Below the pieces are notes generated by a model. It searched no databases. It was not told where the DNA came from and was given only the letters and a program-made list of their open reading frames with translations. A stretch of 37,364 nt of DNA, from assembly GCA_040357565.1 (NCBI GenBank), contig JBDODJ010000110.1; one strand, given 5' to 3'. Shown here in pieces: positions 25,740 to 29,042 of this stretch; positions within the stretch are counted from its first letter, which is position 1, and each line of letters begins with the position of its first letter. The DNA is from Cercozoa sp. M6MM (Eukaryota; Protista; Endomyxa: Ascetosporea). The position numbers were made by a program, and so were the translations under genes.

Positions 25740-26065
25740 CTCACACTGATGATATCAATTGACTCTCGGCCGGATAGTGTTTGTTTGGCGGTTTTTGAAA
25801 GTTGTCGGTGGTTTCTTGTCGGTGGTTTCTTGTAACTCGAAACATCAGATCTGATCGCTCAGTGCTGACCATTATCTGAACAGATCAATAAAGTCACGTG
25901 ATCTGCCCATCGCCCGAGAAGTCCCAAACGGCTGAGCGTTTGACTACTCCTGTTGCACTGGAAACAATAACCTGCCGCGAGTCCGTGTGTGCACAAGCAA
26001 CAGCGAAAGGGTTTGCGTACCCTGGTCAGCTCGGGGGCAGAGCGTGCAGGCTTTCGTGCTCGGCA

Positions 26066-28492
26066 ATGTCGCAATCTGTCGAATTGACCGTGGACACCAG
26101 CCACGTGCAAGCAGGAGTAGCTAACATCAATGCCAAGCGAGACAAGTCCAAGCCTGACTCAGTGCAGCTTGATGTGGCTGATTGGAAGTTCAGTCTCGCG
26201 TGCAAGCAGCAGAGGGTACAATTTTTCGCTTTTGGTCAGTTTCGATCACTTGCGGATCAGGGTGCTATATTGTGATTGTGCGTTTCTCAAAAGTCATTCG
26301 TGTTTGTCTTGTGGTTTGCTTTCGTGCAACAACAGGTTCTGGTGGGTGCGATATGGCTCGCTGCGCTGGTGCCCGTGATCGGGAGTCTGGTCCTGGGCGT
26401 GCAGGTGCGGAATCTGCTGCACAAGCAAATGCCGGCAGCGATGGAGGCTTCTTTTGATTTTGTGGCGCTGGGACTTTCGCGCGCGCAGCAAATTGGCGTG
26501 GCCTTCACGACGATCTTCCAGCCCGCGTTGCTGAGCGACCTGAGTGCGCGCTACGGCTTTGATGCTTTCGCCGAGGCCAGCACTGTGGTCGAAGGTGAGC
26601 GCTTCTGGGCTGAGCTGCGCGCTGTCACGGAAGACTACGCCACGCGCCTTGTACGAAACGACCTGGCGCCCAAAACTGCCTCTGAGTTCGCGAACACCTA
26701 CATTCCCTTCATGCAGCGTCAGATGCCGTGGGAAAGCGTTTGTTTTTTTTTTTTTTTTTGTTTTTGTCTATTGGTAGATTAGATAAATAAGTTGGGCACA
26801 TTTTGTATAATTTTTGAGCAGCAAGGCATGGAAAAAGCTCGCACGGCGACGAATGAGACGGAACTGCTGCAGGCACAGGAATTCATGTCATTTCGGATGC
26901 CTGAAAAGAACAACGAAACGTACTTTAACATCCCGGTCCTGACGTCCTCGCTGGTGAAGGTGCAGGTGGCTAATGCTGCTGATCTCGCCGATCTAAAGCA
27001 GGATGGGCGTCACACACGCGAGAAGGCCGTCCGGTGGGCCATTGCCGGCGTTTCTGTCGTAAGCGTTTCTCTGTGTTCTGTTTTTCCATGTATAAGACTT
27101 TTGGTTATTTGGCAGCTCTGCCTGGCACTGGTGATGGCCGCGCTGACGACAGCGAAAGTTCACAGCGCGGAGGAAAAGCTAAAGCAGGCGATTCGTGCGA
27201 GTCGACGACGATTACGACGGCGCATGGATCTGGATGAGATTCGACTGGTGGTGACATCGCCCTCGGCCGAGTCCAACGTGATTTTTGGAAATGATGATGA
27301 CAACGAGGACGAAGGGAGACTTGAGTCGGAGTCGCCGAGAAGTGACGCCGGCAGCAGCGACGCTGGCGACGATCGGCGCAGCTACATGGGCGAGTCCGTG
27401 CTGAGTGGCAGCACGCGACTCTCGCACCACACGGGTGGCACGGGCACCTCGGGCAGTCGCGCCACGTCGACGAGCCCCAGCAGCACGGACTGGCGGCGGC
27501 GTGCGCAACGCACACTCAAGCAGAAGGACCGCATCGTGTCTCTGTCCTTCCTGCTGTGCTGGACGCTTCTGATGCTGTCCACGGTACCTACCCTTTGCTC
27601 ATTATGTACCTGTTTTATTTGTTTCTTTGTTTATTGTATCAGAGTCTGTTTTTAAATACATTTATTGACTTGTGTCGATATGCTTAAATTATACTGCCTC
27701 GTATTTTGATATAACATCCTTGCATGCTCCGCATTCGGCACAGGTACTGTTCTGGGTGCAAGCCGAGCAGGCCGAGGACGACGTGAAGGACATCGCCGAC
27801 GTGCAGGTGCCACTAGCTACCAAGTCCTACAAGGTCGTGTCTGACTTTGAATCCGCCTGGTCGGCCGTCATGTTGGCTGGTAGTCACACCTTCCAAAGCA
27901 GGGAGGTCAAAGGGAAGGGAAGGGTAAAGACAACCGGTGTGTGCAGTGACGGCTGAGAGCGACTCGATTCGCGAACTCTACTCGAACATGACGTTCGTGA
28001 CACTGGGCCAGTTTCAGACTTCGTGGCAGCAGATCGAGGCGCTATCACAGCCGCCGCCCGAGGCCGTGGCGAGTGCCGAAACGTACATGCAGACACTGGG
28101 CTTGATTGCGCAGAAGACCTTCCGCGGCGGCAACAACGCCACAGTGGCCGAGGCGCGTGTGCTGTTCAACAGCACGCTGCAGGAGTCGATGCAGCAGCTG
28201 CTGGAGTACGCCGTGCCGCTGCGCGACACGATCGTGCGCGACGTTGACGAGGTGACGGACTCGGTGCAGCGGCGCATCAACACGGCACTCGGCATTGCCG
28301 TGGCCGCCCTCATCATTGGCGTGCTGGTGGCCGTCTTCCTCGTGTCTGCTGAGAACAAGCGAGCCGACGCGCTGCAGCTGCACTGGAACGCGCGCACCTG
28401 GTCGCTCGAGCGCGTCATTGACCACGCTGAGCTGTGCCCGATGCTGCTCAAGCAGGCGCAGGAACTCTACTGTATCTCACTTCTACACACAT

Positions 28493-28524
<32 letters not shown>

Positions 28525-29042
28525 CCGGTGCAGGCGGCGAGAACGTGGACTTCCTGTCGGCCTACCGCATGGCGGCGCGCAACGGCCTGACGTCGCAGCA
28601 TCTGGCGGAGCTATACCACCGGTTTCTGCACAGCAAGGCGCCCGACATGCTCAACATCAGCCACGAGCTGCGCAGTAAGGTGGCCGACCTGTTCGAGCAG
28701 ACTTCGCAGGATGAGGTGCTCAGCGGCGTCGATGCCGAGGAACGTGCCGCGCGCGAGCGGCAGGCTATGATCCTCGCCGAGAAGGACCCGGTGCTGCGAA
28801 CGCGACGACTGCGCGCGCTCGCCACGGTGCACGAGGAGGTCAGTCGACTCGTCTCAACTAACCTGCTGCAGACGTTGTTGCAGTCCACTGGTGCCACTTT
28901 CTTCCTTTGTTTTTCCTTTGTTCTGTCTTATTGTTCATTTGGGTGTTGTGACGCAGAGTTCGTGAACTGGCAGCGTGAGCATCGCGCGCACGCCGAGTTG
29001 GAACTCAAACTGCTGCAAAAGCGCGCCGGCCTGCGCGTGTAA
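26066..29042 (+). CDS. Four-TM protein with two helical extracellular modules and a C-terminal RGS domain (786 aa; exons 26066-26215, 26336-26737, 26822-27058, 27116-27583, 27744-27879, 27947-28471, 28534-28890, 28957-29042)
   Basis: All seven introns are GT-AG and phase-consistent (2361 nt including stop). RGS motifs: WSLERVIDH...ELYCGENVDFL, LYHRFLHSKAPDMLNIS, EVSRLVSTNLLQTLLQSTEF. Four hydrophobic helices. Confidence 0.85.
28493..28520. repeat. (TA)n microsatellite in an intron
   Basis: 14 TA units within intron 28472-28533. Confidence 0.9.

Follow-up and report, generated by a model that had tools for sequence, protein, structure and literature searches.

The window analysed here is a 37,364-nucleotide stretch of DNA, contig JBDODJ010000110.1 of GenBank assembly GCA_040357565.1, from the protist Cercozoa sp. 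M6MM. It carries MHM6MM_003490, a gene encoding a predicted membrane protein with four transmembrane (TM) segments, two large helical loops and a C-terminal regulator of G protein signalling (RGS) domain. An earlier note, made from the DNA alone, had read this protein as a tandem pair of bacterial chemoreceptor sensors fused to an RGS domain. M6MM is a cultured marine amoeba from fish gills that phylogenomics places in Apofilosa (Rhizaria); it has since been described as Lemnamoeba sinaloensis, and its draft genome comprises 23.67 Mb in 2244 scaffolds (PMC11069148, PMC13746701). A transcriptome has been deposited as SRX22918777 (PMC13746701).

Gene structure, membrane architecture and paralogues

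The eight exons that the earlier note had joined translate, residue for residue, to the 786-amino-acid database protein P0001, titled 'MAG: hypothetical protein MHM6MM_003490 [Cercozoa sp. M6MM]'. The same record was returned with a 100% match when exon 6 alone served as a phmmer query, and it was the query in all full-length searches. Translation runs from an ATG at 26066 to a stop codon at 29040-29042. All seven introns are GT-AG, 57-160 nt long and AT-rich (GC 0.24-0.54), while the exons have a GC content of 0.53-0.65 and 0.77 at third codon positions (GC3). Exon 6 contains both TM4 and the first RGS helix in one open frame, and their junction is therefore independent of splicing.

TM segments were called from Kyte-Doolittle hydropathy in a 19-residue window. 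Four peaks of 2.2-3.1 were found, at the four places where TM segments had been predicted, so that four hydrophobic segments precede the RGS box and not the seven TM helices of the 7TM-RGS proteins. Charge bias is strongest at TM3, with seven Lys or Arg among the 15 residues before it and one after, and a positive-inside bias is also evident after TM2, where the stretch is strongly basic. As the earlier note had counted, five of the six N-glycosylation sequons fall in the loops (NET195 and NET215 in loop 1; NMT478, NAT528 and NST539 in loop 2), the sixth, NIS680, lying inside the RGS domain. Every paralogue described below also has loop sequons, at positions that are not fixed. Based on the charge bias and the loop sequons, the likely topology places the N-terminus, the linker and the RGS domain inside and both loops outside. 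The composition of the linker is acidic and Ser-rich as described, and AlphaFold2 (AF2) models it as disordered, with a predicted local distance difference test score (pLDDT) of 25-41 and an absence of secondary structure over residues 310-385. The Pfam and hhalign matches to RGS begin only about 17 residues after TM4, in agreement with the earlier count.

The C-terminal domain was indeed recovered as RGS, the top Pfam family for P0001 and for two annotated paralogous proteins, P0002 and P0003. Additionally, hhalign comparison of a four-paralogue C-terminal alignment with two M6MM domains that Pfam accepts as RGS (72.8 and 38.6 bits) gave a probability of 97.7% and an E-value of 1.8e-12 over 118 columns. 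In that alignment two motifs that are invariant across the four paralogues, GEN(V/I)xFL and MLN(I/V)S, correspond to RENLDFL and PVNLS of canonical RGS domains. In the RGS4-Gi-alpha1 complex the Gα contacts include a Glu-Asn pair (E87/N88) and an Asn of the α5-α6 loop (N128); both the Glu-Asn pair, within an ENxxFW-type motif, and the α5-α6 loop Asn are present here. Structure prediction was less informative for this domain: in the full-length AF2 model the RGS region has a pLDDT of 55-70 and the loop 2 bundle accounted for the matches listed by the fold searches, and the AF2 model of P0002 (pLDDT 44) was too poor for comparison of the RGS fold. From the sequence comparisons the assignment to RGS is secure, and the domain is likely competent as a GTPase-activating protein (GAP).

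A six-frame search of the genome (23.6 Mb, 2235 contigs) revealed three more copies of the gene, on C13, on C373 and split between C284 and C611, each of which keeps the segment order through to the RGS domain. Recurrence of this order in all four paralogues, one of them pieced together from two contig ends, is evidence that everything between the exon of TM1/loop 1 and the RGS domain belongs to a single gene. For exon 1 a match was obtained in just two of the three further copies, with weak conservation (32-36% identity), the exons of TM1/loop 1 and of loop 2 being 50-61% and the RGS exon 49-74% identical to the copy in the window. Averaged over the paralogues, identity is 48-54% in the loops, 60-74% in the TM helices (TM1 64%, TM3 74%), 74% in the connector between TM4 and the RGS domain and 65% in the RGS core. 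Conservation in the family peaks in two stretches, TM3 and the connector together with the RGS start.

Outside this genome no member of the family was encountered. A phmmer search of 1.84 billion representative proteins with exon 6 returned family relatives only from M6MM, a word-indexed search with P0001 returned only P0001 and P0003, and pattern-based scanning of contigs from metagenomes and prokaryotes returned no relative. Paralogues of the same architecture, which the earlier note had proposed to look for here and in other protists, are present as four copies in this genome with none found elsewhere, and on the sequences searched the family is lineage-specific, found in one genome only. 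P0004 (372 residues) is repeat-rich, probably bacterial and unrelated to the family; it matched exon 6 only through a repeated 'LILHWNGRTWSK' that resembles the conserved connector 'LQLHWNARTWSL', a short-motif match judged to be due to chance.

Two of the paralogous loci are incompletely represented in public records. The copy at C373:1066-4040 (minus strand) is annotated as P0003, a 608-residue protein whose first residue falls midway through loop 1. The sequence ahead of this annotated start contains exons that match exon 1 and the two halves of exon 2, and a TAG at the edge of one of these matches is probably intronic; the public model of P0003 therefore looks N-terminally truncated. In the split copy, C284:1-868 corresponds to exons 1-3 and C611:2748-3963 (locus coordinates) to exons 6-8, the latter annotated as the 305-residue fragment P0002, with the middle exons in an assembly gap.

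Read-level data touch the gene in two further ways. Introns 2 and 6 contain a poly-T run (26732-26776) and a (TA)n microsatellite (28481-28531), respectively. Logan contigs from the source run break at both, which fits a genome reported to be unusually rich in simple sequence repeats (PMC13746701). Contigs of 206-247 nt identical to parts of the gene (26000-26405 and 28146-28392) turn up at 2-12x depth in one run from each of three other studies, one run being labelled gut metagenome, and imply that the same or a near-identical organism was present in other samples.

The genome that encodes this family is well supplied with G protein components. Gα was matched by PF00503 in 63 exon-level hits at about 20 separate loci, and RGS domains exceed the Pfam cut-off at no fewer than 15 loci (at least 15 genome-wide), a repertoire that agrees with the lineage-specific radiations of Gα in Bigelowiella natans and of RGS proteins in rhizarians (PMC3971589). 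One Gα gene (C13:122474-123697) and the C13 paralogue (C13:~137550-140600) are about 14 kb apart, which is probably a coincidence given the number of Gα loci. A six-frame search of the genome with Pfam Globin (PF00042) gave no match at E <= 0.01.

Table 1. Coordinates of the gene and its segments in the window, with example loci of the Gα and RGS repertoire elsewhere in the genome (aa, amino acids)
Feature	Position	Strand	Remarks
Whole gene	26066..29042	+	8 exons, 786-aa protein P0001 (MHM6MM_003490); spliced translation equals database record
Exons	26066-26215, 26336-26737, 26822-27058, 27116-27583, 27744-27879, 27947-28471, 28534-28890, 28957-29042	+	
Exon 1, N-terminus (aa 1-50)	26066..26215	+	hydrophilic, predicted cytosolic; KQQR end just before TM1
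TM1 (aa 51-72)	26336..26401	+	hydropathy peak 2.45
Loop 1 (aa 73-255)	26402..27034	+	contains intron 2 (26738-26821); all-helical in AF2; predicted extracytoplasmic
TM2 (aa 256-276)	27035..27154	+	hydropathy peak 2.27; split by intron 3 (27059-27115)
Linker (aa 277-402)	27155..27532	+	predicted cytosolic; basic helices flanking an acidic, Ser/Thr-rich disordered stretch
TM3 (aa 403-424)	27533..27758	+	hydropathy peak 2.21; split by intron 4 (27584-27743)
Loop 2 (aa 425-577)	27759..28284	+	contains intron 5 (27880-27946); up-down four-helix bundle (AF2)
TM4 (aa 578-598)	28285..28347	+	hydropathy peak 3.1
Juxtamembrane connector (aa 599-614)	28348..28395	+	AENKR...LQLHWNARTW; run of invariant columns in paralogue alignment
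RGS domain (aa ~615-763)	28396..28970	+	contains introns 6 and 7; Pfam PF00615, hhalign
C-terminal helix (aa 764-786)	28971..29042	+	REHRA..E.KLLQKRA, kept in all paralogues; then stop codon
Gα/RGS repertoire, example loci	C25:48771-49982, C28:85818-86845, C35:25167-26264, C96:13931-14489		

The ectodomains and bacterial sensors

To describe the fold of the two loops, we used AF2 on the whole protein with the shallow alignment of paralogues. Overall pLDDT was 56.6, rising to 73-92 across residues 400-600. Within this region loop 2 forms an antiparallel bundle of four helices (about 425-466, 470-498, 502-522 and 528-577) flanked by two TM helices. One helix, 386-466, comprises the segment before TM3, TM3 itself and bundle helix 1, and another, 528-623, runs uninterrupted through bundle helix 4, TM4 and the connector.

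Structural searches with this region returned mainly bacterial sensors. The top of the Foldseek list against the PDB was occupied almost only by them (the Adeh_2942 sensor, the MCP2201 ligand-binding domain (LBD), Tsr and Tar), with E-values of 0.017-0.06, none reaching the 0.001 line, and TM-scores of 0.55-0.72 by target. In the VIA comparison, where Z-scores under about 13 are common among helical bundles, the best match was the PcaY_PP LBD (6S18; Z 14.5, 134 of 143 residues, 2.5 Å), and TorS, PilJ, the LBD of a methyl-accepting chemotaxis protein (MCP) and the Vc1313 LBD (8BSA; Z 13.1, 152 of 158 residues) scored between 13 and 14. The ESM Atlas, whose scores are leads only, listed bacterial MCPs with 4HB_MCP_1 domains as structural neighbours of residues 395-610 (TM-score 0.78-0.79 by query). 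When ranked by language-model features, its nearest named clusters were CHASE3, 4HB_MCP_1 and PilJ (0.88), and the very top feature matches were unnamed ciliate and bacterial clusters (0.90). We are confident, on these models, that loop 2 is a four-helix bundle in chemoreceptor topology, continuous with TM3 and TM4.

Loop 1 is a different matter. Its AF2 helices (73-123, 135-156, 165-206 and 221-255) have a pLDDT below 50 over most of their length, so that the modelling suggested by the earlier note bore out a bundle for loop 2 and left loop 1 at low confidence. The sole hint that the two loops pack together comes from the ESM Atlas, in which 329 residues of the whole-protein model align to a 336-residue NIT protein with twin bundles (TM-score 0.79 by target). 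Prediction of a complex between residues 40-290 and 395-610 scored 0.02, which speaks neither for nor against a pseudo-dimer.

The fold resemblance was not accompanied by a similarity in sequence. The Pfam sensor families PF12729, PF02203, PF05227 and PF13675 gave no match at E <= 10 on any exon, the full-length paralogues gave no match to 4HB_MCP_1, TarH, CHASE3, PilJ or NIT at E <= 1, and the exons of loop 1 matched no Pfam family. After TM4, Pfam recognised only RGS and no cytoplasmic HAMP, MCP-signal or kinase output. When TM3, loop 2 and TM4 were aligned together with E. coli Tar, Tap, Tsr and Trg, hhalign gave a colinear alignment (178 columns to Tar, P = 0.0018; reversed control, P = 0.17). 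However, loop 2 stripped of its TM segments scored 11.7 against the periplasmic domains of the same four TarH members, which is at background (11.5 +/- 0.6 for 25 circular shifts; 11.3 +/- 1.8 for 25 column permutations). Since the signal vanishes once the TM segments are removed, it derives from them. Both profiles in this comparison are shallow (Neff, the effective number of sequences, about 1.7), and a distant homology beyond detection may be compatible with the result.

The two halves of the protein were compared in the same way, with paralogue segments joined by X at unresolved junctions for local hhalign. Half 1 against half 2 gave a probability of 1.6% (P = 0.03), and loop 1 against loop 2 with the ectodomains only was at background. 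The earlier note had set loop 2 beside chemoreceptors on the strength of a motif ('AEDDVKDIADVQVP' compared with LEEIYEDRLP) and had seen in the similar beginning of loop 1 a sign of tandem duplication. Because the profile comparisons equal their controls, these resemblances do not rise above chance, and neither homology to 4HB_MCP_1/TarH nor tandem duplication of the loops is supported. Of the chemoreceptor sensor proposed for loop 2, the fold is thus supported by AF2, Foldseek, VIA and the Atlas, while the sequence relationship is not, and the likeness to bacterial sensors is best read as one of fold and topology, reached by convergence or by divergence beyond detection.

Alternative explanations

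Our preferred explanation is that MHM6MM_003490 encodes a lineage-specific, receptor-like transmembrane RGS protein, that is, a membrane-embedded GAP; we give this a probability of roughly one half. In such a protein the RGS domain would accelerate GTP hydrolysis on one or more Gα at the membrane, the ectodomains would bind a ligand or a surface cue, and binding would change GAP output. The change could be brought about by displacement of TM4 and the conserved connector, or by relocation or internalisation mediated by the Ser-rich disordered linker, on the model of plant 7TM-RGS1. We infer ligand gating and either route for it, and the same holds for the 'GPCR-independent chemosensing' (GPCR, G protein-coupled receptor) of the earlier note. 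Conservation that is higher in the TM helices and the connector than in the loops fits helices that signal combined with sensor domains that diversify. A narrower form of the proposal, in which a Tar-like bundle and a second helical module in one chain pass a ligand signal through TM4 and a rigid connector to the RGS domain, tuning the switch-off of a self-activating Gα and not GPCR-driven exchange, appears unlikely.

Several observations weigh against a receptor-like GAP. The faster evolution of the loops would fit weak constraint on them equally well. Cysteine is absent from both loops, an unusual feature in ectodomains of eukaryotes, and a bundle fold for loop 1, predicted to be helical, is not established by its low-confidence model. 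In the VIA comparison the unrelated bundles of PsbQ (13.4), talin (13.1) and designed proteins (12.8) are effectively tied with the sensors. The RGS domain is itself divergent: P0001 scores 22.9 bits against PF00615 (E 1.2e-4), below the 23.9-bit gathering threshold, with P0002 at 20.6 and P0003 at 20.1 bits (E 1.2e-4 to 8.9e-4 over the three), an insertion of about 31 residues precedes the last RGS helices, and searches of PDB sequences with P0001, a profile of the RGS exon and a family profile gave no meaningful match. GAP competence is consequently not assured. Lastly, the 786-residue splice model is a prediction from DNA plus automated annotation.

The strongest competing explanation is that the protein is a constitutive GAP or scaffold anchored in the membrane, whose TM segments and loops serve only to hold the RGS domain at a given membrane (plasma membrane, pseudopodial or endomembrane) or are structural elements of the surface, with no gating by a ligand. 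Many eukaryotes have fusions of RGS and TM segments that lack a known ligand (PMC3971589), and here the loops are the least conserved of the folded parts, Pfam recognises no ligand-binding family in them and the pseudo-dimer prediction yielded nothing. However, two ectodomains of about 150-180 residues have been kept in four paralogues at about 50% identity, and conservation of the TM helices and of the TM4-RGS connector exceeds what a passive anchor would lead one to expect. The arrangement of a four-helix bundle between two TM helices is, moreover, the geometry of bacterial transmembrane signalling. We regard a purely passive anchor as possible, if somewhat unlikely.

It is improbable, in our estimate, that the loops are true 4HB_MCP/TarH homologues, transferred or ancient, which arose as tandem duplicates and form an intramolecular pseudo-dimer that drives the RGS domain by a piston movement. 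The Foldseek list, the MCP neighbours and named clusters of the Atlas, its superposition of the whole protein on a twin-bundle NIT protein and the hhalign match to Tar that includes the TM segments all point in this direction. Set against them are the ectodomain-only score within its controls, the lack of any sensor-family Pfam match on the exons, the lack of relatives among 1.84 billion representatives, prokaryotic genomes or metagenomes, and a background-level comparison of loop 1 with loop 2. Generic bundles score nearly as well in VIA, and Atlas values below 0.9 are leads only. Additionally, both loops contain introns and the composition is that of the host genome, so that any transfer would be old.

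An RGS domain that lacks GAP activity and instead binds Gα or another protein as a scaffold, anchor or effector, in the manner of GRKs, axin or SNX-RGS proteins, seems very improbable. Such domains are well known (PMC3971589, citing Anantharaman 2011), and the sub-threshold Pfam score, the insertion and the missing sequence match to a solved RGS structure would suit one. On the other side, the ENxDF motif and the Asn corresponding to the one important for catalysis in canonical domains are invariant in the four paralogues. Finally, the idea that gene prediction merged a TM/loop gene with an RGS gene, prompted by the automated origin of the model, can be dismissed for practical purposes: it is refuted at the TM4-RGS junction, which lies within the single exon 6 and recurs in all four paralogues, only the upstream junctions resting on splicing.

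Comparison with known systems

RGS domains fused to TM segments are known in most eukaryotic lineages (PMC3971589), and such proteins, including the ligand-regulated 7TM-RGS proteins, form an established class (PMC3971589, PMC9283941, PMC3865004). The earlier note knew of no description of the architecture; the general class proves to be known (PMC3971589), and what is new is the variant with four TM segments and helical ectodomains. The four-pass architecture is therefore a variant of the TM-fused RGS class and not a wholly new idea. Its significance is bounded by its occurrence in one genome and by a fold similarity that is generic. M6MM nevertheless lends itself to experiment, being cultured, with a small genome and about 20 Gα loci, and the ectodomain and the RGS domain are small enough to express.

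The SNX13/14/25 type and the cercozoan DUF4395-RGS cluster share with the M6MM protein an RGS domain tethered to the membrane by N-terminal TM segments (PMC3971589). They differ in the number of these segments and in having no helical-bundle ectodomains, and are related to it only in RGS. NIT proteins (PF08376) likewise carry a pair of adjacent helical bundles flanked by membrane anchors; theirs is one continuous periplasmic domain, whereas the M6MM bundles are parted by TM2, the linker and TM3, and the comparison is one between two predicted models, with loop 1 of low confidence in AF2.

Bacterial four-helix-bundle sensors (Tar and Tsr with TarH, PF02203; 4HB_MCP_1, PF12729; 6S18; 8BSA; the MCP2201 LBD; Adeh_2942, 4K0D; TorS; PilJ) have the same succession of TM helix, bundle of about 150 residues and TM helix, in which helix 1 continues the first TM segment and helix 4 runs into the second. 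In contrast to them, the M6MM protein shows no detectable similarity in sequence or profile and has no HAMP or MCP-signal domain, and its gene is eukaryotic, with introns inside the module and two modules per chain. If the receptor-like reading is correct, the bacterial solution of signalling from a bundle through a TM helix can drive a eukaryotic G protein regulator.

Also among the closest known systems are the 7TM-RGS proteins, which are thought to hold a self-activating Gα in its GDP state until a signal relieves GAP activity (PMC3865004, PMC9283941, PMC3971589). Those of Arabidopsis (RGS1), Naegleria and Trichomonas resemble the M6MM protein in having a polytopic membrane part followed by a C-terminal cytosolic RGS box. 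They consist of seven packed TM helices and have no large ectodomains, whereas the M6MM protein has four TM segments, a disordered cytosolic linker of 126 residues and two ectodomains, both helical and about 150-180 residues long, and the similarity is confined to RGS. To our knowledge, receptor-type GAPs of the 7TM-RGS kind are the only well-studied case of extracellular control over the step of G protein inactivation. A ligand-gated M6MM protein would then represent a second, structurally unrelated design of receptor-RGS protein, and eukaryotes would have reached the wiring of a sensor to a GAP more than once.

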